From Lepidodermella squamata (Eukaryota > Animalia > Gastrotricha): a stretch of 64,000 nucleotides of DNA. Below the pieces are notes generated by a model. That model had not been told where the DNA came from. It did not search any database and saw nothing but the letters and a program-made list of their open reading frames with translations. A program made the position numbers and the translations under genes. Below, piece after piece: positions 29,902 through 56,820 of the stretch (the stretch's first letter is position 1; each line of letters starts with the position of its first letter). The stretch is from assembly GCA_047495785.1 (NCBI GenBank), contig JBLDXI010000034.1:186001-250000 (forward strand), given 5' to 3'.

Positions 29902-32900
29902 ATGCGCCTGATTTTATTAATTCCAATTTTGAGCCTATTTTCAATCGGCTTTTGTGCTGACAATGAAAATGACGTTGAACCGACGAAAATTCCCGAAGTC
30001 ATTGATCCGGAAAATCGGCATCGCGATACTGTTATAAAATTGGCTAAAAAACATGGCAAATTCGGGAAACGGTTGAAAATGATCAAAGCTAAAGTCTCGA
30101 AAAAATGGACTCTACCAATCAAGTACACCTTCGATTCTGAAATGGGTTTGTCCCAATTTAGTTTTAAATGCCAATTTATTTCTGTGTTTTAATAGAGTTG
30201 AAGCAGAAATTGTGGGCGAATAAATCGCTTGTCGATTGGCAGCGTAATACGTGTTTGAAATTCGAATTTATTCCAAACGAGAGCGAAGTAACTGGCCCGG
30301 CTATCCATTTTGCTGGGACTGATGGGTAAAAATATTTGAAAAATTTGGGAAAAATATTTTCAATAATTTTGATTCTCAGAGCAACCCATGGCGGCGGAAA
30401 TAGGGAAGGAAAATACCCGCATGGTGTTTCGATCGAAGTCTCAACAACTGTATCACCGGTGAGAAATTGGAAAAATTTGAAAATTCCGAAAAGTTTAATT
30501 TTTTTTTAATTTTTCAGTACGGTGACCTACTTTTCTATGTCGGCTGGGTGTTGGGTTTGACCTATGAAATGCGACGACCAGATCGCGATCAACACCTTCG
30601 AGTTTTCCATCCGTAATTTGTACTCAAATTTAATTTTAATTTTTCGACAAACTTCTTGATTTTTTCCAGCGATGTTGCTGCGTATGAAATGAACAAAGAT
30701 GCGATGATGGGCGATACGCCGTTTGATTACGACTCGATAATGAGCGCCGATTTTCAAGGCGCCTTCGAACCGCACGACCTGCGCCACCTGTACTCGGTGT
30801 CCCAAAATAGCTATGTCTCATTTTTGGACAGAAAGCGCATCAACTTCCTTTACGACTGCTCTGGTTTGAAACTAATATAATATAATTTTTTTTCGAAAAT
30901 ATCGTTTCCACGCTTCTGACCCGTTTTTAATAGGAATTCACTTATTTACAAATTTTCAATGCCTATTTTTCGAAATTCGATATTTTGAAATTCAAATTTG
31001 AAATTAAAAAATTCTGAAATTCAAATTTTTTCTTGACCTTAATAATTTAAAATATTTTTTAAATTTTTGGATGTTTTTTCGAATTTTAGTTCAATGTGCT
31101 AGCAAAGTGCCGTGCCTGTATGGCGGTTACCCGAACCCGATAACCGACTGCCGTCAATGCATCTGCCCGCCGGGCTTAGCCGGCACCCACTGCCAGTTTG
31201 TTGCCCTGCCAACTGCGGCCGAGTGTGGCGGCGAAATATTTGTGGAACCCTGCACGTCTAAAACCATCACATCGCCGCAATACCCTGACCAATACCCGGC
31301 TGGGTCAAAATGCTCTTGGATTGTTCACACGGTGAGTTACAAAAATTGATGTCCTCAAAAATTCAAAAAATAAAATTGAAAATAAATGGGACAATCTAGC
31401 ATTTATTTTGGCCCATCAAATATTTATTTTCTTATTTTTTTGCTTTTTTTAAGGAGGAGGGCAGTGGGCTTATTTTCGGTTTCGAGTCTCGTCCTGGAAT
31501 GCCCAAGCATGACTTCTGTGAGCTAATTTTCTTGAAAAAACCTTCAATTTCACATGTTAATTTTACAGATGAGACTTGCGCTGATTACGTGTCCATTCGC
31601 GAACTGAACGATGAGACCAATAATGTCTTCAAGTAAGCGAGAATTTATACGCGAAATATATAATCACTATAATTTTTTATCAATTACAAATATAAATTTT
31701 AGCACTTCAGTGATTCTCAAACTGAATTTTTTCAATTTTTTAAAAATTTAGAAATTTTTCAAATGAGGAAAATTTTCCGAAATTGTTGGAAAAGTGTTTT
31801 TGGGCTCAAAAATCAAGACCCAAAAATAATTAGGGTAAATTACGTATTAATTAATTATTTCTTGATATTTTCGGTTGATTTAAGATTTTGCTCTGCTGGG
31901 GTCAATTCTGGGCGCGTTTTCGTCACCAACCACTCCGAAGCCCTGGTTCACTTCGAATCTGTCCTGCAACAACCCGCGCATGGCTTCGAACTCGTCGCCT
32001 ACGCAACTTGCCCTGACATTGCCGCGACTGAAATGACAAAGGAATGCGTTATCACTGACTCGGGCTACGACTACGAGGGCGAAAACAGCGAATCGCTGAG
32101 TGGTAAAAAATGCAATTTTTGGGCCGGTCAACGCGATTTTGCGCGCCTCGACTTCCCGCGCGGCCGCCTCGATGCGGCGATGAATTTTTGCCGAAATCCA
32201 GACGGCGGCAATTCGACGGCTTGCTTCGTCGATGATGGCTATGCTCAGCTCGAAAAATGCCGATATCCTGGAAAATGCCGTTAGTAAACATATTTTTCAT
32301 GAGAATTTAAATTTTAGACTTCAATTTGAAATTTTGAAAATTGTATGCGTATTTTTCAATTTTTTTTTAATTAATTCAATTACAGAGTCGTTGATGGTCC
32401 GTTGCTTGAATAAGGAAACGAAGGAATTTTCTCAATTCCGCCCTGCCAAACCTGGGTGTTCAGCTGAAGAAATTCAGATGGGCGATAAATTTTTCGGACA
32501 TACCGTAGAATTCGGGGTAAATTTATTCATAAAATTCTGTTATTTATCTTTATTCAAAAATCAAATTATAGGGCGTTAACAAATGCTACGATCCCAAGGC
32601 TGATATCAGCCGTTGCGTTGCCGAAGAATTGCCTTGTGAAGCTCAAGAAGAAATCATGGCGACCTTCACCGATTCAAAGTATTTCAATCGAAATTTAATG
32701 ACCTGCTCGCACCAACCGGGAAATGTGAAAAAAATTCCAATTGTTTTCATAAAATTTAAAAATATTTTTTAATTTTTCTCTTAGACCTATGTGAGATGCT
32801 ATTCGAAGTATAACCGTTTCCGTGATTGCCAACGCGAGAAATTCGGCTGTCGCCAAAACGAGGTCATAAAATTCCAATTTTTTTCGTCGAATTTTTTCAA

Positions 32901-33025
32901 TTTTTCAATTATTATAGGTTGCTGTTGGGAAATTCGAAACACCATCAGCTTGCTACGAATATTCAAACGGTGCTGAGATTGAGGCTGAACTTGAATCGCC
33001 TATTTTTCATGAAAATTCGGACTAA
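29902..33025 (+). CDS. Astacin-like pseudo-metalloprotease: signal peptide, M12A-like domain, EGF, CUB, kringle and three Cys-rich modules
   Basis: MRLILLIPILSLFSIGFC signal; KW.LPIKYTFD, W.RNTCLKF, RRPDRD, PFDYDSIM and SFLD.K.IN.LYDC astacin motifs; CLYGGYPNP..C..CICP.GL.G..C EGF; CGGEI..ITSPQYP.QYP..CSW CUB; YEG..S.SGKKC.FW..NFCRNPDG kringle. Stop TAA at 33023-33025 and AATAAA at 33101. Confidence 0.85.
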
Positions 33026-33158
33026 CCATCTGCAACTTGGATTTCTTTCCTAAATTATGACAAATTATTTAATTGCGTTATAACAATTTTCTGGAATTTT
33101 AATAAAACAATAATCGTGTTGAAAGATCAAATTTTATTAACCTCAAAAATTCAAATTT

Positions 33159-36100
33159 TCAATTCATGTTCAAATGCGTATTGTCAATAATAAGGTCATT
33201 ATTTTGTTTGAGCAAGGGCACGAAATTTGGCGTGGTCGGTGATAGGCTGCCTGCCCCTCGAGAAACGCTGCGGCTTTGACTCGTAGGGACAGCTACGTTG
33301 AATTCTTCCAAGTCAGCCAGAGCTTGCTTAGCGAGGTATTTTTCGCGTTTTAGCTTCAACTTGAGCTGCCACGGAATGTCGGGCACAGCTAGATCGATTA
33401 GACGTTGAATCCCGAACACTACATGCTGGAAAGAAAATAAAACAAAATCGTCAACAAATTCCAAAAATGTTCTCATGTTCAATTTTTAAATTATTTTTAA
33501 ATTATTCCTCATTAAAAGTTGAATAAAAAATCCAAGAAATCTAAGAGGTCGAACGAATTGAACGATGGAATTTTCGATATTTTGAAATTTTTTTAAATTC
33601 AAATTCGAAAATTAATTAGGCTAGTACTCACTTCAAAGACAATAACAAATGCCAGCCGGAGGATGAACAGTTTATAGTAGAAAATCGTCGGTTTCCCATC
33701 ATTATCCCGATAGTCCAGGTACCTAGAAGTTCGATTTTATTAGTTTTAAAATTCTTTTTCCCAACTCACCTGCATTTGATCGATTCGCCGTCCACGTCGA
33801 TGACAGAATCTTCAGGAGCCCAAGCCAAGGAAAAATTGACATAACCAGATAGGGAACCTTCATTTTCAGCTTTATAAAGCTGAAAGAGCTTATAATGAAC
33901 AGGAGAAAAAGATTCGATCCTAATCCTTTACCAGTTGAGGCAGAAAATCGGAGGTGAAAGCGATAAGAAACGCATTCCCAATAACGCAAATCCTCGTCAG
34001 AGCCTGGAGAAAAGTTTCGAAATTTTTTAGAAATTAATGGGGCATTAAAATTAACCTGAAGAATTTTGAACCATATTCCAATGTTTCTTGCCCTTCGAGC
34101 AACTGGTCTTTTAAAAATTTAAAAATTGTGGATTTTTTGAAATTTAAAAAATTGTCGAATTCCAACCTTCGAGTTTTGCAGACAAATTTTTGAGCATCCA
34201 ATCGAATTTCAGCCCAGTTATTGATAACGGCGAAAAGCGGGGCGAGCGGGAAGGCGGGGGCGAAAATGGTGATGAAGCCGAACTGAAGCACCATTTCGAG
34301 GTATTCTTGGAACAAGCCTTCGTTTTCGATCATTTCGTAGTCTTCCTCCCAGCGAGGTCGTACAAAACGTTTTTTGTTTTTTGTTATGGCAAAATTCCAG
34401 CCGCCAACTTTGAACCGGTGATGCAAAGTTTTCATGTAACTGAAAAATTGAAATTTCATGAAATTTCATGAAATTTCGGGAATTATTTTTTTTTCACAAA
34501 CGGAATCGCTATTTCTTTCAAGTTGCCGAGAAGCTGCTTGCCGATCATGATAACCGCCAGCTGAAAATAAATTATTTAAATAAAATTGAAATTCAATATT
34601 TTCAAAATTTTGAAGAAATTATTAATTTTTTAATTTTTTAGGAAAATTTTACCTGCTGGGCTAATTCGATTAAGCACGATCCGTTGCCGCACTCTTCGGG
34701 TCTCAGGCCGAGAAATGAGGTGTAATGACCAGGATAGCCGACAAATTTGCCCTTTATGAAGCCAACGTAGATGATTGAAGCGTAGTAGTTGACAAAATGA
34801 AACAGGAATCCTTTTGTTATCAACGCATCGTCGAACGAACTCTGCGTTCTATGCATCTCTAAAAATTGAAAAAATTTCGAAAAAATTGAAAAAAGCTTGA
34901 AAGTTAGAAAATGTCTGAACTGAGGTCAAATTTTGACTTCTGAATTTTGCAAGTTCAAAATACAAAATTGTATGAAAAAATGAGACGCAGATTTAAAAAT
35001 GTCCGAAATGAGGTCAGCATTTTATTTTTTGCAATTTTCAACTTCAAACAGCGTCAAATCAAAATTAAAAAAAAACTTGCCCCATTCTGTGAGTTTGACT
35101 GCAAATAGATTGTAGACGTTCGAAAGAGCCATGATGAGCACGAGATTGACGAAAGCGCCAGTAAAGTTGGCGATGAGACGCGAATTGCTTCGAGTAAATT
35201 CCAGGTCGTACAACGGCCCACTGACTAGAGATCGATACAGGATCACAGCTATGATGAAGGTCAAAACCAGCGATATCTGAAAAAACGATAGAAAAACAAC
35301 AGAATATTGAAAATGTCAGAAAAATGGAGGAAAAATTCGAAATATATTTTTAACATTTTCAGGAATTTTCTGAAATTTTTGGAAGATTTAGAGTTTAGAG
35401 AGATTTTTGAAAGATTATTCTCACCATAAAAGCTACAGCTACAACAGTTGAAATTAAGCGAGGAACTCTTTTGAAGCCAGGAACTGTCGAAAAATTTACA
35501 GCTTGAATTAGAAATTCAATGTTTTTCGAATTTACAGAATGGTTCGACAACTCCTGTGATAGGATTTCGCCCACTAGTTGGAGCCAGAGCGGCGTATTTT
35601 GGCCGAATCGGTTCGATTTCTTGCGAAAATTCATAACAGTCCCAGCGATAAGCAAGCCTAGCATTCGTTCGCTTCCAAAATTCCAGAAATAATACAGCTA
35701 GAAAAATCAAATAAAATGTTCAAATAAATTCAGAAAAAAGTTTTAAATTACCCCATAAGGAAATAAGTATTGAATACAACACAGTTCCGCCGTTATCGAA
35801 TAAGTAACTTAATCGTGCGTAGTGGCAACTTGGAAAATTTCGGAAAAATCATAAACTTTTTTTCGGTTGAAACTTGAAAACTTACTAGTCACCATAATGC
35901 CAAGTTTCGCAAGCATCACAGGCAGGACACATTGTAAAATTTTGATCTGTCGCCTCGCAAATTTCCTGACTGTGAAAATTTCAAAAAATTTGTTCGGATT
36001 TTTTAAACTCAACAAATTAATCGAACTATTTTTGAATTTGAATTTGAATTGAATTTTTTCTTACGATTTCAAGTCTGTATGCAGAGTGAAGACGCCGTAA

Positions 36101-39100
36101 ATGAACAAAGCTAGGCCGAAAATCGCTGCAGGTAGCAACCATGCCGTATAGTACCCCAGCCAAGCAAAATACAACCCGACTTGCTCGCCGAAATACGCTC
36201 GAATATGCTCGAGAGGCTGGTATTTAAACATCAAACCCCATCTGGCCCAACATTTGCGCAAAATTTGCCGATCGTTCAAATTAGACGGGTCAGGTTGGTC
36301 ACGGCTATTGCTGCTATTGCTACTGTCATTTGGGTCGGTTTCGTCCGGGCCACTGTGAAGAGGGTAGGCTGCGGTGAAAATTTGCTCCTCGAGTAATCGC
36401 TCGATTCCAACTTGAGCTAGTCCCCTTTGACCATAAACAGTCTCAGCTAATTAATTAAAAATTATGAAATTTTTGAAAAAAATTGAGATTCCAAACTTTT
36501 TCAGAATTTTGTTAAAGATTATTTCAATCTCTAAATTATCAATTTTCTAAATTTAAAATTTAAAAATCTAAATTCAAGTTCAAGTTCAAAATTTAAATTT
36601 TTACGTGTCTGAAGTTGGCGGTCCAATATTTTCAAACCTTAGCGAACCATCTCTAAAATTATTTTTTCCACCATGCCAACTCACTTTGACGTAGTGCCGA
36701 CCGTGGCACATCTTTTAAAATATATTGTGGGAGCTAAAAAATCAATTTGACATGGTCCGCTGAACCTGGTTCGCCAACTTCCGTATAGGGCCGAATATTG
36801 AAGTTGGCGAACCAAGTGTCAGCGAACCACAATGACACCATCTGAAAATGTGTGCCAAGACTTGACCATTCCAAGAATATATCATGACACATTAATTGAC
36901 CCATTTAATTATGTGCTAAGATGAAGGAACAAGCTTTATTGAAAGCAACTAAGTGGATAAAATGCTGGGTTAATCAAGTTAGTTTCTATGGGAAGGAGAA
37001 GAGTTTCGTCAATCATGCTTCAACAAATCTTCTTGTTCTGCGCGCTATTTGACTCGTTCGGCCAAAAGCAGCGTTAGAAACAGGTCCGGTCGACGGACGC
37101 CGTTCCGGGTCCGTTCCCGTTCCAAATCCGGCATCGGTAGACCGGGTAAAATCCAAGGAAAACCAGATTTTCCTGTTTCGCTCATTGTCCTACCTGTTAA
37201 CATGCAACTGTTAGTGCGGTAGTGCCATGTTTTGCAAGCGTATCGGAGGTTTGGGGGTGGGTTTGCGGCTTCCGAACTAATTTACTGACCTTAATCGAGA
37301 GGCCCCGTGGGTCTTAAAAGCCTCCCAATAGAGATTGATTTGATTTTTTAGGTTAGTATCGCAATTATATGCGTTATGTTCGCTATTTTCTTGCGATTTT
37401 AATCATGCAGTTCCAAACCCGGTAGAACAGGCCGTTCCCGTCCCGGTCCAGGTTGACTTACACCGTTCGCAGGTCCGGTTTGTGTCTGCAAAACCCTACC
37501 AAAACGACGGCCAGGGTAGCGGATGCAAACTATGCTCGATACTTCGAGGCTCGCTCAAGCAGAGGATGTGATGAAAAGCTAAGGTCTTTTCGAATTACCC
37601 CCACTTGCGTATCTAAGCTAAACCCAAACTTCAAACGTAACCCTAACCTTAACCCAAACCCTGACCCTAAACCTAACCCTAACCCTAACCCTAAACCTAA
37701 CCCTAAAAAAGATACGCAAGTGGGAAATTCGCCAGTGGGGTACACCCGTCTTTTCGCCCTTGGACAGTGTGAGGTCAGAAGGAAAGGGATGGGAATCGAC
37801 AATACCCGTCAGCGGTCGCCTGATAGTCGCCAGGTTCCAGGGGCGGCACTGAAGGTCACAATCGTCCAGTGCTCCTACAAAATTCGGACGAAGATAATGA
37901 AGATATGACATGCTTCAAGCGCAAGCTGAGCTTTTCCCAAGACATGCTCTTCTTATGGTCATGGGGGACTTGAACGCTAAGGTTGGATCGAACAACCCCG
38001 GCTACGACAGTCCATGGGTACGCACTCGCCGGGCACCCGAAAAGATAACGGTGAGTTAGTAAACTAAGTCAGTAAAGTGCTGGGTGAATCAAGTAGCGGC
38101 TTCAATCTGAGGTACTGCTCCCCATGCATCAACGTGTTACCATCGGCGTGATTAAGCTCCACAAAGAGATTGCCTCTTAGCCAGCCCAGAAGCATGGTAG
38201 TAGTAGTAGTAGTAGTTGTAGTTGTTTTAGTGCTGCCTCCCCGCACATCCGACTCTTTCTTGAGTCGACAGGTGATAAACGTGTGAGTTCCGTCAAGGCT
38301 GCCAAGGTGCGGAAACGCCCCAGATCGTGTCCGCTATTTCGCGTAGCCTCGTCGTCTTAGCCTGCAGCTGTTCAACGCAGGTCGCCAGCAGAGCTAAATC
38401 GTCGGCGAAGTCTAGGTCGTGAAGCTGCTTTGAACAACATCCACCTAATCCCATCATTTTGCCGCTCAGTGACAGTACGCATCACGAAATCAATCGCAAC
38501 GCAGAATAGAATCGGTGAAAGGATGCAGCCCTGCCTGACACCAGACCATGTCCGCTAGGTCGGCTGCCGTTTGGGGATGGCTGCGCTTGCTGACTGCAAG
38601 CATGTTCGTAAGCCGTCTCAGCTTGCTGACAGATTTGTGGGGCGAAAAGACCGTAGCTTTTCCTCACTTACTCTGCTTGAGAGAGCCTCAAAGTTTCGAG
38701 CAGCGTTTGCACGATGAAACCCAACTCTTGACACCAGTTTTACATCCGGTACCGTGGCCTACCTCGCTCGACTGCCTTTGCAGCTTTGGGCAAAACGAGT
38801 CGAATAGCGCGAAGAACAAGAAGAAATCTTGAAGCATGACTGACGAAAATATTCTCCTTCTCTTAAAAACTAGCTTGATTCACCCAGCACTTTACTAACT
38901 TAGTTGCTTTCAATAAAGCTTGTTCCTTCATCTTAGCACATAATTAAATGGGTCAACTAATGTGTCATGATATATTCTTGGAATGGTCAAGTCTTGGCAC
39001 ACATTTTCAGATGGTGTCATTGTGGTTCGCTGACACTTGGTTCGGCAACTTCAATATTCGGCCCTATACGGAAGTTGGCGAACCAGGTTCAGCGGACCAT

Positions 39101-40330
39101 GTCAAATTGATTTTTTAGCTCCCACAATATATTTTAAAAGATGTGCCACGGTCGGCACTACGTCAAAGTGAGTTGGCATGGTGGAAAAAATAATTTTAGA
39201 GATGGTTCGCTAAGGTTTGAAAATATTGGACCGCCAACTTCAGACACGTTAAATTTTTGAATTTAAAATCTCATAATGAAAATGAAACGAACCGAGAATT
39301 TCCCAAGCTATTCTTGATCGATTTGTCTCGCTGAAAAACGTATCCTTGTTATCCGAGCCTAGAAACCGGTCGAATTTGCTGTTTCGAAACTGGCACGTGT
39401 AGAAATGAAGCGGACTTCGAGGTACGTCTTGCTCGAACGGGTTTGAAATGCGGCATTTTCGAAGTAAATCGGCCGTGAAATTGTCAACTTTGTATGGATA
39501 GGCTTGAAGTGGCGCTCGTAAGGCTAGATGCTCGGCGTAGTAGCACAACATGTCGAATGGAACATGAATTTTCAGGTAATGAATCACCTTTTCCGAGTTG
39601 ACTTCTTTTATCTGATTACGAAAAAATACAAAAATTAATTCTAAATTTTTAAATTTTTTGAAAATTTCAGCAGATTTAAAAATTTTCAAAAAATTTATTT
39701 TTAAAATCTAAATTTCAAAATTTAGCAATTACCTCTTCTTCGATTTGAGCTTTTTTCCTTAAATTTTTCAGAAATTTCTGGCGCCATTTTTCTCGTTTGA
39801 TTTCCTCCGTTGATTTCGCTCGCGGAATAGCTTGCAACATCGGGGTCTCACTTGTTCCCGATTCCTCCTTAGTTTCGGACCCGAAAGTGACATGATGTTG
39901 ATTTTTAACATCATTGCTGCTACTACTACTGGTTGGTGTGTCCCGATGGCTATTATTGATGATTTCCTCCCATACAAGGACAAAATCAATGCGCCGCTTG
40001 CCGTCGCGGAAAAAACAGCTAGGATCGGTTGGAAAATCGGCATCGCCTAGCCGGCTGTTGAATAAATTCTCATGAAGTCGGACAGCTTCTTGACTTTCTT
40101 CATTATCAATTTCGTTAGCCTGGAAAATTTAATAAAATATATTTTACCATGAATTAAAAATTCAAAAAAAATGATAAAATGAAAGGCCTTCCTCAAAATT
40201 GATAAAAATTCAATTAAAAAATACTAAAATAAAATTGATAGAAAATGAGGGGAAATACCTGTGGTAGAATGTAGCTAACTCGAACGCTGTGATGAGGAGA
40301 ATCGGACTCCCCTTCAGGCGATTTCTGCAT
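33159..40330 (-). CDS. Anoctamin / TMEM16 family Ca2+-activated channel-scramblase
   Basis: [93 protein letters not shown] and VPDIP motifs. Likely ATG at 40330. Confidence 0.95.
37591..37731. repeat. Degenerate (CCCTAA)n array enclosed by short inverted repeats
   Basis: CCCACTTGCGTATCT (~37600-37614) and AGATACGCAAGTGGG (37710-37724) flank telomere-like hexamers. Confidence 0.8.
37780..38050 (+). pseudogene. Fragment of a non-LTR (RTE-like) AP endonuclease
   Basis: Frameshifted [14 protein letters not shown] / KVTIVQC and MGDLNAKVG motifs. Confidence 0.7.
38290..38482 (-). pseudogene. Fragment of a non-LTR (RTE-like) reverse transcriptase
   Basis: MRTVTE..GIRW (frameshift) [22 protein letters not shown], the catalytic xADD motif. 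Confidence 0.75.
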
Positions 40331-41066: not shown

Positions 41067-42453
41067 TTAAATGTTGAGGACCGAATATTCGACTGATCGA
41101 GAATTCGGGCGGCTGGTTTTAAGGCGGAAGTAATTCGCCCGCACTTGGTATTGGCTACACGCGCCAACCACCTGTTGCATCTCGCAAACCGAACCAGCCG
41201 AGCAGATGCTTTCAACACTGAACGTCTGCTCTTCCAAGAACGAATCCGAGCTCTCGAGACGCCAGTCATACTGCGTAACTTGGCTGAACCCTAACGTCAG
41301 CTTGAACTTGGTCTCCAACTTCTGGCTAGTCTCCTTAGTAATCGAATTTCCCTCCGAGGTCGTGACAGTCCGGGTGGTTCCAACCTTCTTACGATACGTG
41401 CATTTCATAGCTTCGTGGCTTTGAGAAGCATCGCACGTGTAAATTCGTTCGTAGTAATCAACAGGAACCTGGCAAATTTCCATAGGAACTTCGCTGCATG
41501 TATGGTCGTAGCGGTACATGCCCGTAGGACTGCTGCGCTGCAGGTGGAAGTACTGCATCAGTTGACCGGCTGGGCATTTAGCATGGTGACGGTCCAGGTA
41601 GAACATATTGCCCTTACCGTCATCGTTAAATTGCGTATGATGCATGTCATTGTTCGACGCGCCTTCAACCTGCAAATGAGTTTTCGAGGTCAGAGCAACA
41701 TTCAAGTTTGAGGCGGAAATCTCAAAGACGAACTTTGGAAATCTTTGTCGGTCTTTGATCAGGAATCCGCCCCAATCTATGCTCTATCGTTAATGTATAG
41801 GATTTCCTAATCAAAAGTGTTCAAGAAATGAGCAGTGCGTCATTGAAAATGAGGACTTCGAGCGCGCGAACATCACTCATCTTGACCTATTTCTTTCAAT
41901 GACGCACTGCTCATTACTCTAACACTTTTGATTAGGAAATCCTATACATTAACGATAGGGCATAGATTGGGGCGGATTCCTGATCAAAGACCGACAGAGA
42001 TTTCCAAACTTGGTCTTTGAGACTTGCGTCCTGAAGTTGGGAATTCTGAAAACTCACCGTACAGCAGGTGTAGCGATACCTCATGTTTTGATTATCCCTA
42101 CTTTGCCTGTCCAACCGGAATCCCTTCAAAAACCCAGCCGGACCACAGTTGACATGTTGCCTATCTAGATAGTACGCATTCTTAGTGTAGCTATAGTCGT
42201 TGACGCGTTCGTAGCACTGGTTAATGTTAGGGACACTGCAGCATGTGAATTCGTAGTTGACCAAGTTTGAGCCAGGGCGTTTCAGACCGAAAGAGGTCAT
42301 TAGGTGGCCATCAGGGCAGTTTACGCTATGCCTGTCCAAGTAGACAACATCCCCATTTCCGGCTAAATCAGCCGGCGTGCTGTAAGACTTGGTCGAACAA
42401 GCATTAGCCAGGCCGAGAGCGAGGCCGAAGAGTGCGATCTGGAGAAAAGCCAT
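41067..42453 (-). CDS. Secreted protein A: three YLDR[HQ]..C repeats plus Ser/Thr-rich aerolysin-like C-terminal domain (candidate beta-pore-forming toxin)
   Basis: Exons 42058-42453 (signal MAFLQIALFGLALGLANA) and 41067-41669, phase-0 intron. C-terminus CTYRKKVGTTRTVTT..KFKLTLGFSQVTQYDW..QQVVGAC. The gene model is solid; the product call is an inference. Confidence 0.7.
41720..42022. mobile_element. Palindromic (foldback) MITE in the intron of protein A
   Basis: ~130-bp arms TCTCAAAGAC..TTTGGAAATC..GCGTCATTGAAA / TTTCAATGACGC..GATTTCCAAA..TCTTTGAGA with a short spacer. Confidence 0.85.
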
Positions 42454-42722
42454 TTTCCTCGAAAACTCAACAAAAAATACTGAGGCATTGCGGGCGTAGG
42501 TCACGCCAGTTTTTTCGCAAACAGATAAGGACAGGTACAGTATCAGGTGAGCAGAGATAAGACTTATTGTCGCTAGAGTCACGTCGTGCAAAGACAGGGA
42601 GCTTCGAGATAAGACTCCGTTCTCGATTTTTCAATGTTTCAGAGATGCAACACCTCACGAATTTTTTTATTTAATTCTCCCAGGGTGTAGTACCAATTGC
42701 AAAAAGATTTTGCTGACATTTT

Positions 42723-44042
42723 TCAGCTGTCATTATTTAGTCGAATGAAGTAATAAATATCGGCTGCGAAACCAAGAATCATCACTGCAGTGCCTAGAAT
42801 GATATCGGCCAGTCGGGCGTAGCACAAGTGCCAGCGACCAACTTTTACCCGCCTGCATTGCTTGATCCGGCCAGCGAGCGGTACCGTGACGAGAGTATAC
42901 ATTGTGATGACAAGACCAACAATGAACTTGATTATGACCATCGTGACCAAGTACATCGTTTCAGATGTTGGCGGCATGCCGGAGAAGACAAGGGAAAGCA
43001 AGACTGCGTTTGCTAGCACAGCAGACATGGCAAAAGCCGGTCTGGAAAATTCAAAAATAAAATGCGATTATTAAAAATAAATCTAAGGTAGACACAAATG
43101 GGAAAAATGTTTAATTTAGACCAGTGATCGAAGTAGGATCCTAGGGCTAGGGACTAGGACTAAGGTCCCTCTTTGGGCTTTTCGGGTTTTCTTGCGTGGA
43201 CCTCTGGAGGTAGGTGGTACCCCAGGAACTTCGTACACTTCATGTCCCGATTTAACGAAATAATTACCTATTTGGTAGTTTTGGAGGTAAGACGAGGCAA
43301 GTCACTTGGAGGAAAAAGGTCGCATAGGACGGAATCATCATGCTAGCAAATTCGAACTTAAGGAAGCGTCTGTTCCATAGAAGGTCACATCGTACCAAAT
43401 AAAGTCGGCAGTTTCGTCCGTCTCGAATCTCATCTCGCAAGTTAGTGAATCGAATGGGAAGTGTTTGAAGGAAAACGAAGTGCATGCCGTGTCGATACGC
43501 CGCACGTACCCCGCAACGGCCATGGGGCCTGTAGATTTGAACGGCATGATGAAGAATGTATCATCTACAGGTTCGCTTTCGAATGGCCTCGGTTGTAGAT
43601 AGGCATTAATGTGGCCAAGGCAAGGATGCCAAACATCACGAGGTGTAACAATGAAATAGAGGCTTTCAATGCGATCTGTCGGCATGTTACACAGTGGAGA
43701 TCCAGGCACTACGTCCTCGCAGTCGTAAATCGGGCACGGGAATTTCCATTCGAATGTGAAGTACAGAAAAAGAGACATTCGCTGCTCGACGTCGCTTATT
43801 TCGATGAATCGGAACAGATAGGCAGATGCGGCAACGCGGAAGGCTTGAGTGAAGTTATTCGTGGCGATGGTTTCGCCAGGCAAGCTCTTCGACGTAACAA
43901 CTGGGCACCAAGTTTGAAGGTATTTATCGCGCAGCTCATCGATCAGCGCTCTGGTTGGTACCTTTTTAGTCTCAGCGCTGCTTAAGCTGTGGAGAATAAT
44001 GCAAGTTGTCGCTATCAAAGTCAAACTTTGTTGAAGCTGCAT
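42723..44042 (-). pseudogene. Divergent Cys-loop ligand-gated ion channel copy 1, frameshifted by a 151-bp deletion
   Basis: Paralog of copies 2 and 3. The sequence matching 48429-48579 of copy 3 is absent at ~43348, giving SSNLLA-stop; M1 and exon 2 (42723-43041) are retained out of frame. Confidence 0.85.
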
Positions 44043-44778
44043 AATAGCTAAAACGTGAGAAGTCAACTCGAATTTGATTGTTAACTGGGTGATCCATTAC
44101 TGTCAATGGAACTAGGAGAATATCGGTGTGATCGAATTTTGAATGCTTTTGAATAATTAACACTCTATGGTTAAATTGCGCATATTTGCGCATACGAAAC
44201 GTCCAGATAATAGCCGTAGGTTGTAGGATGCATATTATCTGCTTACGCCAGACTGGTGTTTTTCGATTTTTTTCTGGTGAACTGCATACAAAACCACTAA
44301 AATATTCATGGTAATTGTCAAAAGAAATCACCTGGACATATCATAGAATTGAATTTAAAACTCGGATGCCTTGCCATATTTTCAGGCAACCGAGAAAGCG
44401 TCATAAAGATCGAAGGGTATGCGTATTTTTCTAACTTTCACTATTGCTTTTTTCAGGTTTTGGTTTCTGCATAGAGAGACTCAAGCCACTTCAAATTTTT
44501 TAAATTTTCCTTTTAAAATTTCTCCATAAGCACATTTTAAAGGACATTTCAGCCTTCATTGTATCCTGGCTTTGTAACGAGAGTTTTCATCCATCAACGA
44601 CTAACGATTGGCGGCTTTGGCTATTTCAGGCGGAAATCATCGATGCCTTTCTTGATAGGGAAGATCGATTTGGACAATTCGATTTTGTTAGCTAAGGTCT
44701 CGTGAAGCTCTTTGATATATGAAGATATATGCGTGCCGGTTGTTCTCCCTCATTCGGTTTGGCTTTATTGACATGTTT

Positions 44779-46240
44779 TCAATTTTCATTATTTAGCCGA
44801 ATGAAGAAGTAAATATCTGCTGCGAAGCCGAGAATGATCACTGCAATGCCTAGAATGATATCGGCCAGTCGGACGTAGCATATGTGCGCGCGACCAATAT
44901 TGAGTTGTCTGCAGTGCTTGATCCAGCCAGCGAGTGGAACCGTGACGAGGGTATACATTGTGATCAAAAGACCAACGACGAACTTGATAATGACCATTGA
45001 GACGAAATACACCGTTTCAGATGTTGGCGGTATGCTGGAGAAGACAAGGGAAAGCAGGACTGAGTTCGCTAACACAGCTGACATAGCAAAAGCCGGCCTA
45101 TGGGGAAAAAGAAAGGTAATAAATTGAATGAACAATTTATGGCAAATTTTTCAAGGTGGACAAAAATTCAATTTAAAAACTTAATTTAAGGAAGTAGGAT
45201 CCTCGAATAATGGGTATCCGGGGGTTTTCGTGCTTTCCAGATGGGGTAAGATACACCCTTTCCCCTCTACTTCGTACACTGTTTGAAATTAGACTCTCTC
45301 AAAGGTATTTTCAAAGTTATTACCTATCTGGTAGCTTTGGAGGTAGAATTAGACAAGTAACTTGGAGGAAAAAGGTCGCATAGGACGGAATCATCATGCT
45401 GGCCACGTAATAGTTGTATTTCCGCCTAAAACGGCTTGTTAGGACCATTCGAGAGAAAACGCCAGTCGACTCGGTTATGTTACGACTTTCGCCTGTGAAG
45501 GATCTTCCCGGGTCATCCGGATATTTTAATTCCCAAACATCAGTGTCCGTTATCAAATTCGAACTCAAGGAAACGTCTGCTCCAAAGTATGTGACGTCGT
45601 ACCACAGAAAGTCGACTGTTTCCTCCGGCTCGAATTTCATGTCACAAGTAAGAGAATCAAATGGGAAATGCTTGAAGGAAAACGAAGAACACGACGTGTC
45701 GATTCGACGCGTGTAGCCAGCTGAAGCCGCGGGCCCTGTGGATTTGAAAGGCGAGATGAAAACTAAATCATCTCCAGATTCGCTTTCGAATGGCCTTGGT
45801 TCGACATAGGCATTCATGTGGCCGAGGTAGGGATGCCAAACGTCTCGAGGCATCATAATGAAATAAAGGCTCTCAATTCGATGTTCTGACATGTTGCATA
45901 GTGGAGAATCAGGCACTACATCCTCACAGTCGTAAATCGGGCATGGGAATTTCCATTCGAATGTGAAGTAAAGAAAAAGGGACATTCGCTGCTCGACATC
46001 GCTTATTTCGATAAATCGGAACAAATAGACAGCTGTTTTAACGCGGAGGGCTTGGGTGAAGTTGTTTGTAGCGATTGTCTCGCCAGGTAAGCTCCTCGAC
46101 AGCACAACTGGGCACCAAGTTTGAACATATTTTGCCTGCAGCTCATCTATCAGAGCTTTCGTTGGCGCCTTTTTAGTCTCGGCGCTGCGGAGAAGTAACA
46201 AAGCAATCGTTATCAAGGTTAAACTTTGCTGAATTTGCAT
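44779..46240 (-). CDS. Divergent pentameric (Cys-loop) ligand-gated ion channel subunit, copy 2
   Basis: Exons 45324-46240 and 44779-45097. Signal peptide, ISDVEQRM, VWHP, C..FPFD..C loop, RRKYNYYV pre-M1 and four TM helices. Confidence 0.9.
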
Positions 46241-46564
46241 AGATGTAGAAGGTTGAAGTTAAATTGCAATTAACTGCTGAGGGGGCTATATTAAAATGCA
46301 TTATTTTCATTGGGGACAGGGGAATATCGGCGACTGAATTTTAGAATGCGATTCCGTTGAATTATTAACACTATGGTCAAAGTGCGCACATTTGCTATAC
46401 GAAATCGTGCCTATTTCCGTACTCGAGAGTGATTTCCCCCTTGTTTCCTGCTCGTGAGCTGCATACTTGAACATCTGATATATACTCATGGTAATAGTCA
46501 ATTAAAGCTAAAAATCACGGAAAAACTGCGTTATGGTTCGAAAAATCAGTGGTTATCGAATATC

Positions 46565-46852
46565 GAGGGTGACTTTTTTATAGTGGCAATAATCCATGTT
46601 AGCAATAATTGCGTCTAGTACTGAATCATCTTTGTATGGCGAGTACTTGCATGTCGATTTCTCCAAACTTAACGAACTCGTGCTAGCAATAAAATTTTAT
46701 GAATGGCCTGGTATTACGCGATAATTATCAGATAGAGTTTGAAGAGTTTGGAGAAATCGACTTTAGTGCAGTGCAAGTACTCGCAATACTAGACAGTACT
46801 AGTCCCGATTAATGCTAACAAAGATTATTTCCACTATAAAAAAGTCACCCTG
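46565..46852. mobile_element. Tc1/mariner-like MITE
   Basis: AGGGTGACTTTTTTATAGTGG / CCACTATAAAAAAGTCACCCT termini plus internal inverted blocks; TA after the right end. Confidence 0.7.
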
Positions 46853-47724
46853 TAGAATGAGCTTACCTAAAGTTTACAACGTTTTCAAACAACTCCCTAA
46901 TCAGCAGGTTCCTTGGGTTTACCTTCGAACTACTACTACAATAACTACAAAGATTCGGTGCCAATTGGGGTGATCTTGTAAAACCACTTGAGCTACGTCA
47001 ACAGAGAAATTCAAATTATCACCCACATCGCGCCCACATGTCGCAACACTGGAGTCTGCGAGGATGAGATCGCAATTGGAGAAGAACCAGCCTCTATCCA
47101 TAGCAAAGCCGGACCGCCGACGTATGCGAAATCATCCAGGCATTGCTGTTAAGTTATCCTCGACTAAACGTCGATAACTGGCTGTTCTTCATTCGGCCCA
47201 TGGGGATATCAATGGCTTGAAGGTGTTAATGCTAATCGTCCTCGGACACGCTGCTGTATTATGATTAAAAAAACACGTGAATACCTTCAAGTGTGAATTT
47301 TCGAAAATTTTGTCGGTTTTGAAGTCTTTTGAAGTCGATTGAATATGAAGCTCGTTCGAAAAAATAGAGGAAATTGTGAGGTTTTTTCTGCCGCGGCGAA
47401 CATAAATTCGACGGTATTTTTTATTTTTCACTCAAATTCTAATTCTAAAACATTTCTCCTGTTGCCCATCCTATAATGAAGGATGAACTGGTATATCGTC
47501 GCCCTTGTTTTAGGTTGCTCCGATTGCACACCATTGCACACAAGCCGGTCAACAGAGGCGGGGACGAAACATAAGCGGGCCTATGGAATCAATTGAGAAC
47601 CCACTCATTATGGTTGGGAGCACCTTGGGGCCCAAATATCATCCCATGTTTCCCTTCGCTTCGGGTTCCCTTCATCGCTCATGATTCATCAAAAAGCTTT
47701 TCAAACATTTTATTGAAAATGTAT

Positions 47725-49265
47725 TCAATTTTCATTATTTAATCGAATGAAGTAGTAAATATCTGCTGCGAACACGAGCATTACCACTGAAATTCCTAAA
47801 ATGATATCAGCGATTCGTACGTAGCTCAAGTACCAGCGGCCAACATTAAGCTGTCTGCAGTGCTTGATCCATCCAGCGAGTGGAACTGTGACGAGAGTAT
47901 ACATTGTGATCAAAAGACCAACAACGAACTTGATTATGACCATTGAGACAAATAACACCGTTTCAGAAGTCGCTGGTATGCTGGAGAAGACAAGGGAAAG
48001 CAGGACTGAGCTCGCTAACACAGCTGACATGGCGAAAGTCGGTCTGGAAAATTAAAAATTCAATTCAATTTCTTTTAAAGGTGGACACACATATATTTAA
48101 GGCCAGTTTACAAAGTAGGATCCTCCAGCTAGGAGTGAATTAGGTACTTCCGGCTCAGAATCTTCGGACCAAAGTGTCCCTCTGTGGTGTCTCGACTTAA
48201 CTCCCGACTAAACCCGTGTACCTCCGGAGCTAGGGGGTACGACTCCCCAATTCTCCCTTGTAATTCGTACACTCCATGTGGCTTGAATTTCCCTTCTATC
48301 TATTTGGTATTTTTGGACTGTTTATGTCTCGATTTTCCCAAGTATTACCTGTCTGGTAGCTTTGGAGGTAGGGCAAGACAAGTCACTTGCAGGAAAAAGG
48401 TCGCATAGGACGGAATCATCATGCTAGCGATGTAATAATGGCACTTTCGCCTGAAACGGCTAGTTAGGACCAATCGAGAGTAAACGCCCGTAGACTCGGT
48501 TATATTCCGACTTTCGCCTGTGAAGGATCTTCCTGGGTCATCGGGGTACGCCAATTCCCACACATCAGTATCGCTTATCAAATTCGAACTTAGGGATGCG
48601 TCTGTTCCATAGAATGTGACGTCGTACCACAGAAAGTCAACACTTTCCTCCGGTTCGAATTTCATATCGCAAGTAAGAGAATCGAATGGGAAGTGCTTGA
48701 AAGAAAACGATGTGCATGACGTGTCGATTCTCCGCACGTACCCAGCAGAAGCCATAGGGCCTGTAGATTTGAACGGCGAGATGAAAACGACGTCATCTCC
48801 AGATTCGCCTTCAAATGGCATCGGTGTTAAGTAGGCATTCATGTGTCCGAGGTAAGGATGCCAAACATCACGAGGCGTAACAATGAAATAGAGGCTCTCA
48901 ATGCGATCTGCCGGCATGTTACAGAGTGGAGATCCAGGCACTACGTCCTGACAATCGTAAACCGGGCAGGGGAATTTCCATTCGAATGTAAAGTAAAGAA
49001 AAAGAGACATTCGCTGCTCTACGTCGCTGATTTCGATGAATCGGAACAGATAGGCAGATGCGGCAACGCGGAGGGCTTGGGTAAAATTATTCGTGACGAT
49101 AAACTCGCCAGGTAGGTTCCTCGACATAACAACTGGGCACCAAGTTTGGACATATTTCGCCTGTAGTTCATCGATCAAAGCTTTTGTAGGCGCCTTGTTA
49201 GTCCAAGCGCTGCGAAGAAGGAAGACAGCTGTCGTGATCAAGGTTAAACTTTTTTGAAGTTTCAT
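47725..49265 (-). CDS. Divergent pentameric (Cys-loop) ligand-gated ion channel subunit, copy 3
   Basis: Exons 48349-49265 and 47725-48043; colinear with and highly similar to copy 2. Confidence 0.9.
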
Positions 49266-49815
49266 AGCTATAGAATGTTTAATGTTAAATCACATAGTTA
49301 ATTGCGATTAAAAGGAGTTATAGTTGAATCCAACATTTTTATTGGGCACTCGGGAATATCGGCGACTGAATTTTGTAATCAAGAATGTATTGAATAATTA
49401 ACACGCTATGGTCCAATGGCGCATATTTGCTAATCGAAATCTTGCAGAAAAAACCGGATAAGGCCTATTTCCGTGCGCGAGGGAGGTTTTTCTCCTGGTG
49501 GTTTTTTCCTCGTGAGCTGCATACTTACTTTTTATTATTACTTAATTTCGAGGATTAATATTCATGTAAAAAATATGATGGTACTGAATTCGTGGAAAAA
49601 TAAGGGCACGCAGGCCACTCGTGAAACTCTAAAACATGAGCAGTTAAAATAATTTTACAAGATTGCAGTGTCTGAAAAATCCAGTTTTTGCATTTTTGAT
49701 TTAAAGACTTTGGATTAGTTTCAACTTTTTCAGTAGACAGAGAAACATGAGACGGCAATTCGTACTAAAACGGGAAGAACTCGATTGAGGCAAGTTGAGG
49801 AAGGTTGAGAAAAGT

Positions 49816-49945
49816 CCCGTATCAACAATTTTCAGTAATCCGTGATGCTAATGAGCACTTTTCATTGTGATTTCACGCACTGAACAATGAAAAGAGCTCA
49901 TTAGCATATTTCATCTTACGGAATACTGAAAATTGTTGATACGGG
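49816..49945. repeat. Palindromic mini-element
   Basis: CCCGTATCAACAATTTTCAGTA..ATGCTAATGAGC..TTTTCATTGT / ACAATGAAAA..GCTCATTAGCAT..TACTGAAAATTGTTGATACGGG. Confidence 0.75.
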
Positions 49946-50476
49946 GTGTTCTTGTAGATAGGGGTTCGACGTGGGAAGGAATAGACAAATCGCGCGAAAA
50001 AAATATGGGACCGGGATTGAGCTCAATCAATTATTCAAGTAACAATCAGAATGTTCAATCAGTGATCATCGATTATCGATTATCGATTAATGCAAGGTTA
50101 CCTCAGTACCTGGCTAACCATGAAGCCCATTGGACGCTGCTTTAAGCAGCAAAGAACTGGAACAGCAAAGAACTGGAACCCACGTGATTAATCTCACATC
50201 TCACTTCGTTATTCTGAAAAAAAACAACGCTGCCTCCTTAAATCTGATTTATTTCTCAATATCTCTTAGACCTCTAAAACAAAAATGACTTCTAATGCTA
50301 AATAACGTGAACATGCTAAGATTATTGGTTAGCAGCGATAGGGCTAGAAAAATTATGTCTATAAGTAGTGATTTTTGGATCTTTGAACTACACAGGAATA
50401 TGCATTCTATATATTTGATCTGGAATCTTATTCTTTTTCATAATTTCTATTTCTATACCATCTCAACGGGACCTTA

Positions 50477-51731
50477 TCAGATGTTCAAGGCCATGTACTC
50501 AGCCGTTCCATTTCCAGGTTTGATTGTCTTCAATCGGAAAAACGGTGCCCTCACGACATAATGACCGCAAGTCCCAACAATCTGCTCAATATCGCACGAA
50601 AACCCAGACGGGCACGTGATTTGAAGATCCTTCTTAGTCTCAGGCTGGTAGGACTCGGGTGATTCAAGGCGCCAATCGTACAGGGTCGAATTGCTGAAAC
50701 CAAGGCCAAGTTTGAACTTGCCAATCAACCTTTCCTTAGTCTCATCAGTTAGGCTGTTGCCCTCCGTGTTCCCCGCAATATTTCTGGACACTCCAATGCT
50801 CTTCACAAAGCTGCACTTTGTCGCCTCGCGACTAGCAGTGGAATTACAGCTTTTGACAGTGTCAAACTGGTCGATGGGCGTTTTGCAGATTTCCGACGAA
50901 ATTTCGGCACATGAGAAGTCATAACGGTACTCGCCGCCTCCAATCTTCCGCGCGAGATGGAATTGATGCAGCAACTCACCGGGAGGACATCTGGCGTACT
51001 GGCGGTCCAAATAAATCACGTTCCCATTGCCCTCGTCGTTGTACTTCGTCTGATAGCTAGACAAATTCATATCGCCTTCAATCTGAAATTACGTGAAGAT
51101 TTTAAACAAGTTTCGAAGAACCAATGAGAATTCTTCGATATTTCGGATATTTGAAGCTAATAGGTTTGCCCCCCTGGACCCTGGGATTGACTTACAGAGC
51201 AGCAGGTGTAGACGTATCTAGCGTTTCCATCCTTGCTCTCCATGCGGAAACTCTTCATAACTTCCCCATCGCCACAGAGTATATTCTGGCGGTCCAAGAA
51301 AAACGCACTTCTAGCCTCAGTCCACGCGTTCACTTTCTCCTTGCACGCCTTGATTGTTGGGGCGTTACAGCAGGTGTAGTCGTACCTCATGTTGCTGATA
51401 CCGGTTCGCTTCACCCCGAACGACGTGAGAACATTACCACTGGGACATTCAACCGAGTGGCGGTCTAGATAGGCAACATTACCCTCAACATTGCCACCGA
51501 ACTCCTGCTCCTTCGTGCTGTAGACCTTTGCCGAACATGAATCCATCCCAGGTTCTAGGAGTAGCAATCCAAATTAACAAAAGGAACTTTTCGATGTATG
51601 AATTTACCTCTTCGGCATGATTTCGACCAAGTGCTGAGGAAAACAGCGACTGCCAACGGTTTGAAGTGCCTTGCTCGTCGTAGGGCTGATCGTGTGAGCT
51701 TCAGCTGAAGTTTTTTCGTGTTTCCTTTCAT
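50477..51731 (-). CDS. Protein B, paralog of A (three YLDR repeats plus aerolysin-like tail); 5' exon tentative
   Basis: Exons ~51196-51554 and 50477-51082, with the intron at the same position as in A (TCCS|IEG versus TCCT|VEG); conserved KFKLGLGFS..YDWRLES and QIVGTCG. A putative first exon 51608-51731 is phase-compatible but gives a poor signal peptide. Confidence 0.65.
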
Positions 51732-52640
51732 CTCTCCGAAAAATTTCTGGCTGATGCAATTAACATCTGAAATCGTGACATTGAGCGACAATTCTGCAAA
51801 GGAAAGAAATAATAAGTCTTGGAAGTTCAGAGATTTTCCAATGAATTACTATTGCGGCAATTCACGTAAACGAAGGTCGTACATAGAATAGCTAATGTCA
51901 GTTTATTAATCATTTTAATTTTTCCAAGTTGAAATATTTAGGTTTAGATAATAACATTTCCTTCATCTTTTTTCATATTGAATTTCTGAACAGCTGAATT
52001 GTCATCTTTCATCGATTTTACGTGAGAATGTGCCGATGGCAGCGGCGCGTAGTGAATCCACAAAAGGTTCAAAAATTTCACAATGAGAAATTACTTTGCT
52101 GATGGCCTCAACGAGCAGCATGCATTTGACGATTTGAAAACTAAATAAAATGCAACAAATGAATTTTCGCTCCTGAATGAGTACGTATTTCTTTTTGAAA
52201 AGGGCTCCGGTTTTGGGCGCCAGAATCAACAACTTTTCATTAATTTTAGAATTAGAATGCCAATACATATTTTGAAACCATTTCCTTGGTTCAAAGACCT
52301 GAAAAGCGATAGATTAAAACGATGCTTCTGTCACAACGCTTTACTGCAAGTTTATTACCCGATCCGATCATATAAATCATGCTTCTTCACAATGAATTCA
52401 TCAATCATATTATGTTTGTTAGATCAGTCTTCATAATATGTTCCGTAAGAATTTATGAAGTTAAACTTGGTCGCCGTATATTCGAGTCACCCTCGTGTTT
52501 GTTTAGACACCGCTGCCAACTTTGATGAGTGCTTTTCGAGTATCTAACTTCTAACTCAAGCCTATAATTTATTTTCTGCGCGTTCCAAACATAATTGTAA
52601 AAAGGAATTATCTTTAAACTTTTAAGTGTTTCCAGTTGTC

Positions 52641-55777: not shown

Positions 55778-56820
55778 ATGTCATCTGAAAAGAAAATTAT
55801 TTCTGTTGTTGGAGCAACTGGTCAACAAGTAAAAGAATGATTTTCCTATTCTTCTTGTGAATTGCTCCATTTCTAAAGGGTGGTTCTGTTGTTCGAGCGA
55901 TTTTGGAGGATCCGAACACGGAATTCAAAGCTCGAGCTTTAACCCGTGATGCCGATTCCGCAAAAGCCAAGGCCTTAGCCGAGCAAGGTGTTGAAGTCGT
56001 TCAAGTCAATGCTAATGACGAGGACGCGTTGGCTGAGGCTATCAAAGGCTCTTATGGCATGTACTGTGTCTCCGTTATCGACTGGACCGATCCAGATAAA
56101 GAAATCGCACAGATCAAATCTATGGCGAATGCGGCAAGGCAAGTTTATAATACGATACTCGTAACTAATTTCAAGGCTCATTTTTCAAGGAAAGCGGGGA
56201 TCAAGCATGTTATTTGGTCAACCTTGGATGACACTTCGAAATACGTACCACTGAGCGACGATCGAATGCCGACTTTGCACGGCAAGTACAAGGTGCCTCA
56301 ATGCGAAACGAAAGCTAGCTCTGACAAATTCTTCGATGGCCAGCCTGTTACCTTCATAATAACCCCCGGTTTTTGGGACAACTACTCTACCGGCATGTTC
56401 CCGATTCTTCGTGGCCAAGATGGCAAATTAGCGATCTCATTGCCTATGGGGCAAGCTAAATCGCCTGGCATGGCTGTCGACGACATTGGCCGGTGTGCTT
56501 ACGGAATTTTCAAAGACCCGACTTGGATTGGCAAGCGAATTGCGCTTGCTAGTGAAACGATGACGATTGGCGAGCAAGCAGCTAAGGTTGGCAAGGTTCT
56601 AGGCGAGGAGATTGTGTACCAGCCCGTGCCAATCGCTGTTTTCCGGACCTTGCCGTTTCCTGGCGCGAGCGAAATGGCGAATATGATGCAGTTTGTTCAG
56701 GATTTTAATGAAGAAATGAATGCTACCCGTGATTTTGCTGGGACGAGAAACCTGAATCCGAAGCTGATGTCTTTCGATCAATTTTTAGAGAAATACGGCC
56801 ATCTCATCAAGGCTCATTGA
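55778..56820 (+). CDS. NmrA/HSCARG-family NAD(P)-binding protein
   Basis: MSSEKKIISVVGATGQQ|GGSVVRAIL Rossmann motif (intron 55829-55878), RALTRD, KHVIWSTL, FWDN, DIGRCA and FPGA..ANM. Second intron 56139-56189 is GC-AG. Confidence 0.9.

Follow-up and report, generated by a model that had tools for sequence, protein, structure and literature searches.

A triplet of compact ligand-gated channel genes between two candidate lectin/aerolysin-like genes in the gastrotrich Lepidodermella squamata: a probable chance co-location of two expanded families

Layout of the locus

We analyzed a locus of the gastrotrich Lepidodermella squamata (assembly GCA_047495785.1) in which three genes for candidate ligand-gated ion channels lie between two paralogous genes, here called A and B, that encode candidate pore-forming proteins of a lectin/aerolysin-like type. 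The locus is part of a stretch of 64,000 nucleotides of contig JBLDXI010000034.1 (C34:186001-250000), which is referred to as the window; positions given without a contig name are those of the window. An earlier sequence-only reading of this DNA had described five co-oriented, intron-poor genes, and this description was confirmed: all five genes are located on the minus strand, within 41067-51731, and each contains one or two short introns. The same reading had marked one channel gene as a pseudogene; if its list is taken in coordinate order, the wrong copy was chosen, i.e., the channel proximal to A is intact, and the broken copy is the one proximal to B. The features of the locus are as follows:

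50477..51731, minus strand: gene A, three YLDR repeats (beta-prism-like) and an aerolysin-type tail; about 362 amino acids, from sequence reading and splice sites
47725..49265, minus strand: A-proximal channel, putative compact subunit of a pentameric ligand-gated ion channel (pLGIC); intact, 411 amino acids, from splice sites and open frame
44779..46240, minus strand: middle channel, intact paralog, 411 amino acids, 85% identical to the A-proximal channel
42723..44042, minus strand: B-proximal channel, pseudogene, from three-frame translation and repeat spacing
41067..42453, minus strand: gene B, paralog of A; 332 amino acids, exons 42453..42058 and 41669..41067
41703..42039 (337 bp), no strand assigned: inverted-repeat element in the intron of gene B, resembling a miniature inverted-repeat transposable element; its two 146-nt arms are 90% complementary and 45 nt apart
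51756..51765, minus strand: 10-mer GTTAATTGCA, occupying the stretch 25-34 nt ahead of the start codon of gene A

Gene A consists of exons 51731..51608, 51554..51196 and 51082..50477, with GT-AG introns of 53 and 113 bp. The exons of the A-proximal channel (49265..48349 and 48043..47725) are joined by GT-AG splice sites, and those of the middle channel (46240..45324 and 45097..44779) by canonical ones, leaving 411 codons open. Each gene at the locus has its own upstream region and its own poly(A) signal. In the searches described below, exons of A/B and of the channels were used separately; an intronless paralog elsewhere on the contig, L003, served as the full-length proxy in searches and folding, and exons of the two intact channels were joined in silico solely to verify that the frame is open and of the expected length. 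No Rfam family and no tRNA was detected when the region at 39-54 kb of the window was scanned.

Genes A and B

The products of genes A and B share an architecture of three Cys-rich YLDR repeats of about 50 residues each, with the pattern G-x-G-N-x-V-Y-L-D-R-H-x-V-x-C...F-x-L-x-R...R-Y-x-Y-x-C-C, followed by a C-terminal tail of about 135 residues, in which all invariant positions (C66, G97, S130, W137, Q167, and C172) are retained in both proteins. The sister of gene B, L003 (C34:687.6-688.6 kb; L003:1084-2079), encodes 331 amino acids and has lost the intron that is present between repeats 2 and 3 in both A and B; L003 may be a retrocopy. Gene B is 62% identical to L003 in the tail exon, which is higher than its 45% identity to exon 3 of its paralog A, and the clade A+B+L003 has a support of 100/99 in the tree, where the branch of gene A is long (0.97 versus 0.14 for gene B). 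The two genes also begin differently: gene B has a clear signal peptide (MAFLQIALFGLALGLANA), by which its product is clearly predicted to be secreted, and the N-terminus of gene A is atypical, with a long basic stretch ahead of a short hydrophobic core.

Pfam models, including Aerolysin, ETX_MTX2, and CEL_III_C, gave no match in A, B, L003 or L004; among distant homologs of the tail, two sub-threshold matches were obtained, to ETX_MTX2 (P0091, 20.1 bits with a cut-off of 22) and to CEL_III_C (P0131, E = 8e-3). A word-index protein search with exon 3 of A found no match, and the same search with L003 found five distant unnamed proteins and nothing else. Searching the PDB by sequence with the exons of A and with the tail profile yielded nothing relevant, the sole match being VMO-I, which was reached via the VOMI rows of the alignment. 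Dermatopontin, considered at first for the identity of the YLDR repeat, was dropped, as Pfam showed no match to DERM or to any other family. The full-length profile search of 1.84 billion representatives produced 1957 matches at E<=1e-3, most of them via the YLDR repeats and fewer via the tail.

The two parts of A and B are found in different combinations in these matches. YLDR repeats occur in stand-alone three-repeat proteins and also alongside MACPF (metagenomic protein P0005) or Tectonin (P0012); as far as these domain partners indicate, pore formers and lectins may use the domain as a targeting module in general. Outside this genome, the tail follows VOMI (P0078/P0131/P0134) or precedes PAN (P0057) in metagenomic proteins. 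Within the L. squamata genome, the tail is found downstream of an open reading frame (ORF) with a VOMI domain, as separate ORFs (L011:367-957 and L011:1495-1968, L015; C16:55-62 kb), and after another domain of about 190 amino acids in a single open frame of 319 amino acids (L017:1474-2430; C2:1897 kb). These arrangements indicate that the tail module undergoes domain shuffling.

Predicted fold and pore-forming capacity

AlphaFold models were obtained for exon 3 of A and for L003. The model of A exon 3 has a predicted local distance difference test score (pLDDT) of 84.5 overall and above 90 in the tail. The top structural match of the tail is domain 3 of CEL-III (Z of 7.8 for the A tail and 7.3 for L003, over 111-113 residues, with a root mean square deviation of ~3.5-3.6 A), followed in VIA-align by monalysin (Z of 6.6), Cry23 (5.6), lamprey LIP (5.2), and epsilon toxin (5.0); Foldseek aligned the tail to lysenin with a probability of 1.0 and E = 4e-3, and further matches were to Mpp75, Cry78, parasporin-2, BinAB, and Tpp80. 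It should be noted that these matches are almost exclusively aerolysin-family pore formers, and that their Z values are moderate. In the ESM features, the best cluster was the molluscan “aerolysin-like C-terminal domain” (0.93), and the predicted tail helix coincides with the position where CEL-III conceals its stem. Because the list of structural matches is consistent and is accompanied by the ESM cluster, the sub-threshold matches of homologs and the position of the helix, the assignment of the modeled tail to the aerolysin family is reasonably safe.

The model of the N-terminal part is weaker (pLDDT of 50-79), and the three repeats are clear in the sequence. Its best matches were to the beta-prism of Vip3 domain III (Z of 7.8 and 7.5 over 126-128 amino acids); the C-terminal domain of PCSK9 was matched with a Z of 4.4 and a Foldseek probability of 0.9-0.96. 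On these models, the YLDR domain is probably a glycan- or surface-binding beta-prism. The comparison of YLDR with VOMI (PF03762) gave no Pfam match and was not significant in hhalign (probability 0.9%, E 0.06), with the CP-G...F-L columns in register.

By analogy to lectin-aerolysin proteins, A and B would bind a target surface, oligomerize and refold a Ser/Thr-rich loop together with the helix into a beta-barrel stem. The loop in question, G97-S130, is 32-34 residues long in A, B, and L003 (33-34 in A and B), versus 44 in outside homologs, i.e., it is shorter by 10-12 residues in A and B. The outside homologs have two amphipathic strands in this stem loop, whereas A and B have only the second (KFKLGLGFS / KLETKFKLT), and the loop of L003 is highly charged. 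Pore formation by A and B, as predicted from the models, is therefore uncertain, since the stem loop is shortened and half amphipathic. Under the corresponding alternative, A and B keep the aerolysin fold without forming pores and are either secreted lectin-like or agglutinating proteins or, in the case of A, a gene drifting to loss, for which the long branch and the atypical N-terminus of A would provide additional support. Conversely, every invariant residue of the tail is retained, a hairpin of 32-34 residues could still cross a membrane, and the stem of CEL-III is likewise hidden as helices, in line with the helix predicted in the tail. On balance, we regard this alternative as somewhat unlikely.

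The channel triplet

The three genes between A and B resemble pLGICs by several measures. The scores of the Pfam model Neur_chan_LBD were borderline, namely 26.3 bits for the middle channel, 25.5 for the A-proximal channel and 22.0 for the B-proximal channel, with a cut-off of 26; exon 1 of the channel matched the GABA-A beta3 subunit in the PDB (E = 9e-4), and the ESM features were those of pLGICs (0.97). The Cys-loop CTSFSFKHFPFDSLTC (C-TSFSFKHFPFDSLT-C) contains the FPFD motif and has 14 residues between the cysteines, not 13. The proline of M1 is present (...MMIPSYATFFLQV...), and M2 (PDR-PTFAMSAVLASSVLLSLVFSS) carries the canonical 2' T, 6' S, 9' L, and 13' V after P-D-R, with M3 and M4 following. 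The loop between M3 and M4 is only about 25 residues long, i.e., the large intracellular domain that is typical of metazoan subunits is missing. By these sequence features, the three channels are compact subunits of pentameric ligand-gated channels, and the Asp at position -1' suggests cation selectivity. A word search with the channel exon in 5.8 billion proteins found no relative at E<=1e-5.

Within the genome, this family is very large: at least 131 matches were found, with large arrays on contigs C30 and C19. Identity among the three local channels is 81-85%, and it falls to 70-73% for the closest paralogs among the matches listed, on C16, C7, and C66. The local genes are tandem units of about 3.0 kb, each with a poly(A) signal and an upstream segment of its own (repeats D6 and D7). 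For the two intact channels, the synonymous divergence (dS) is 0.67 and the ratio of nonsynonymous to synonymous divergence (dN/dS) is 0.13, and, judging from these rates, both are under purifying selection. The B-proximal channel has a raised dN/dS of 0.29-0.33. It retains the start codon (ATG at 44042), exon 2 (approximately 43041..42723, with an ORF still open at 43028..42723) and the splice sites; in exon 1, however, 151 bp were lost (repeat spacing of 2056 versus 2207) and the frame is shifted. The deletion removes about 50 codons (beta8-beta10/pre-M1), the frame breaks after “...SSNLLA”, and a remnant of M1 is found in another frame.

Linkage in the genome

Linkage of the two families was examined across the genome (121 Mb in 151 contigs). 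The tail and repeat searches were complete, with every candidate scored, and 129 of the 1667 channel candidates were scored. We compared the coordinates of 16 tail-bearing and 49 YLDR-only hits to those of the 129 channel hits. Besides the locus under study, every tail-bearing locus is more than 40 kb away from any listed channel, and around the closest channel paralogs (on C16, C7, and C66) a distance of 40 kb contains no YLDR or tail match. The distance from L003 to the nearest listed channel is 211 kb. On C7, one YLDR-only gene and a distant channel paralog are 10 kb apart. For 30 paralogous loci outside the window, flanks of 1.5 kb were also examined, and no matches across the two families were found in them. 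The numbers of chance co-locations expected within 10 kb are at least 0.13 for tail genes and at least 0.37 for all YLDR or tail clusters, both values being lower bounds because 129 of the 1667 channel candidates were scored. Thus, the arrangement was not shown to be in excess of chance. Outside of this genome, the homologs of the tail sit on metagenome contigs of 1-4.5 kb, and two larger contigs with distant YLDR homologs have no channel or tail neighbor.

This distribution bears directly on the idea that the locus encodes a toxin and its target or a toxin and an immunity factor, in which the channel would be a receptor, a decoy or a self-protection factor for the neighboring pore formers. 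The sole argument for such a pairing is adjacency, and no precedent for a toxin-channel pair of this kind is known to us. Of the channel genes, which number at least 130 in this family, nearly all are unlinked to tail genes, and the other tail paralogs have no channel in their 1.5-kb flanks or within 40 kb among the listed matches. We consider this pairing very improbable.

As a separate observation, near-identical gene pairs in the same local order were found at C25:2284-2287 kb and C26:574-577 kb, and at C16:1056-1066 kb and C7:1484-1491 kb, and these are either haplotigs or homeologous regions. The region of the window has no second copy in the genome.

Interpretation of the arrangement

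The arrangement is probably a chance co-location of two unrelated lineage-expanded families that came about through local duplication, and functional coupling is not needed to account for it. In the history that we propose, A and B would be old paralogs, and a gene for a compact, probably cation-selective pLGIC would have landed between them, or one of the flanking genes would have moved. The channel gene would then have been triplicated in tandem, in units of 3.0 kb that each carried a promoter region, and one copy would have decayed afterwards. This order of events, in which the A/B pair is old and the channels arrived and multiplied later, is the simplest history, as A and B are 45% identical, compared to 81-85% for the local channels. 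The channels are most likely neuronal or chemosensory receptors, like the rest of their family of 130 or more members.

Several observations weigh against this reading. The in-genome list of channels rests on 129 scored candidates out of 1667. All five genes are co-oriented on the minus strand across 41067-51731, with short spacers, and between the stop codon of the broken channel and the start of gene B there are only 270 bp; if the tandem triplet is taken as one unit, however, the probability of co-orientation by chance is about 1 in 4. In addition, a rare 10-mer, GTTAATTGCA (in the context TCAGnnGTTAATTGCA), is found 33-34 nt before the ATG of both gene A and the middle channel (46265..46274 for the latter copy). 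Finally, operon-like co-transcription is possible if the organism uses spliced-leader trans-splicing; rotifers use such trans-splicing.

An inverted 9-mer of GTTAATTGCA is located upstream of the A-proximal channel (49297..49305), and this site and the two copies of the 10-mer are the only 9-mer matches in the 64-kb window. The 10-mer has 279 occurrences in the 121 Mb of the genome, versus 174 for the reversed control, and the 8-mer TTAATTGC is also present about 90-140 nt upstream of the closest listed channel paralogs (L024 and L025). The region upstream of gene B has no GTTAATTGCA motif. The probability of a motif shared by chance is about 0.02, as a rough and post hoc estimate, and the 10-mer is at the level of sequence a weak hint of co-regulation.

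Under a rival reading, the locus would be a co-regulated sensor-effector cassette: the cells secreting A and B would also use the channels to detect a cue from microbes or prey, and the five genes would be kept together by an operon or a common enhancer. Co-orientation, tight spacing and the occurrence of the motif in promoters of A and channels, with 3 copies in 64 kb compared to 279 in 121 Mb, speak for such a cassette. Conversely, this linkage has no second instance among the paralogs in the listed matches, the motif is missing from gene B and its estimate was made after the fact, of the three “sensors”, one has already become a pseudogene, and the channel copies have promoter segments and poly(A) signals of their own. 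We thus find a cassette of this kind unlikely. It is likewise quite unlikely that compact cation channels and a glycan-targeted pore former are driven by a shared proximal element of the homeodomain type (TCAGnnGTTAATTGCA) or by a trans-spliced operon; if this were true, one cell type would both sense and attack microbes or prey.

With regard to the sequence-only reading, its description of the two kinds of genes was largely borne out, and its functional proposal was not. A and B are supported as candidates for lectin/aerolysin-like pore formers by the predicted fold, the ESM features, and shuffling with known lectin domains, and the middle genes are supported as divergent ion channels. To call the latter orphans was fair, given the outcome of the word search, and the superfamily is that of pLGICs by Pfam, PDB and ESM features. 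The functional link that was proposed, a sense-and-respond locus or a toxin with its partner or target, has only adjacency behind it, and the linkage is not repeated in the genome: the suggested check at paralogous loci found no other adjacency among the listed matches. Chance co-location in a fast-evolving region, which was put forward in that reading as an equal possibility, is the better-supported one.

The arrangement itself is probably incidental and opens no new kind of system. The lasting value is in the YLDR, tail and compact channel families rather than in their vicinity to each other. First, the small aerolysin-type modules make up a family that is uncurated, without a passing Pfam model, and that has been shuffled onto YLDR, VOMI, PAN, and other binding domains. 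Second, the YLDR repeat domain is likewise uncurated and without a Pfam model, and it is also combined with MACPF and tectonin; more candidates for animal pore formers of the lectin type are thereby available. Third, the locus offers a case of gene birth and death that can be dated, in a ligand-gated channel family that is very large and whose compact members have no intracellular domain.

Surroundings of the locus

The next gene downstream of gene B encodes an anoctamin/TMEM16 protein (33000-40000, minus strand), in which the ORF at 39249-39689 matches Anoct_dimer (E = 8e-23) and the ORF at 34034-34459 matches Anoctamin (E = 1e-26). Farther away, an NmrA-like ORF (55903-56820, plus strand, E = 1e-35) and an exon with a Kringle domain (ORF 31763-32284, plus strand, E = 3e-11) are found on the two sides.

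Comparison with known systems

The channels share with known pLGICs, of which GABA-A beta3 is the best solved match, the beta-sandwich ectodomain, the Cys-loop with FPFD, the segments M1-M4 and the 9' leucine of M2, and they share compactness with the prokaryotic GLIC and ELIC. They differ from them in a Cys-loop of 14 rather than 13 residues and in an M3-M4 loop of ~25 residues in place of the large intracellular domain of metazoan subunits; their Pfam scores are only borderline, and no close relative from outside the genome was found by word search.

For A and B, three systems are relevant. The first is CEL-III (PDB 1vcl), a hemolytic lectin from the sea cucumber Cucumaria echinata, in which lectin domains are likewise followed by a C-terminal aerolysin-type pore-forming domain; in the monomer, the segment that will become the stem is partly helical. 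However, the lectin domains of CEL-III are two ricin-type beta-trefoils, whereas A and B have a Cys-rich domain of three repeats; the identity to the tails of A and L003 is only 7-12%, the stem region of A and B is shorter, and the sole Pfam match to CEL_III_C is sub-threshold and comes from a distant homolog. The second comprises the natterin-like proteins, Dln1 and lamprey LIP, animal proteins linked to immunity, in which a binding domain of the beta-prism type (a jacalin beta-prism in those proteins) is also N-terminal to an aerolysin-family module; Dln1 and LIP are among the fold matches, and these families are among the ESM neighbors. In contrast to them, the N-terminal domain of A and B is disulfide-rich, has no jacalin or DM9 signal in its sequence and has Vip3 domain III as its best match, and the tail is smaller (~135 amino acids). 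The third consists of the VOMI-tail proteins (C16:56-60 kb; P0078/P0131/P0134). In these, the targeting domain is a recognizable VMO-I beta-prism, and homology between YLDR and VOMI was not demonstrated; the tail, however, is homologous, with 24-32% identity, and the CC-x-C-P-x-D junction is identical. The homologous tail and the shared junction thus place the VOMI-tail proteins and A/B in one effector family.

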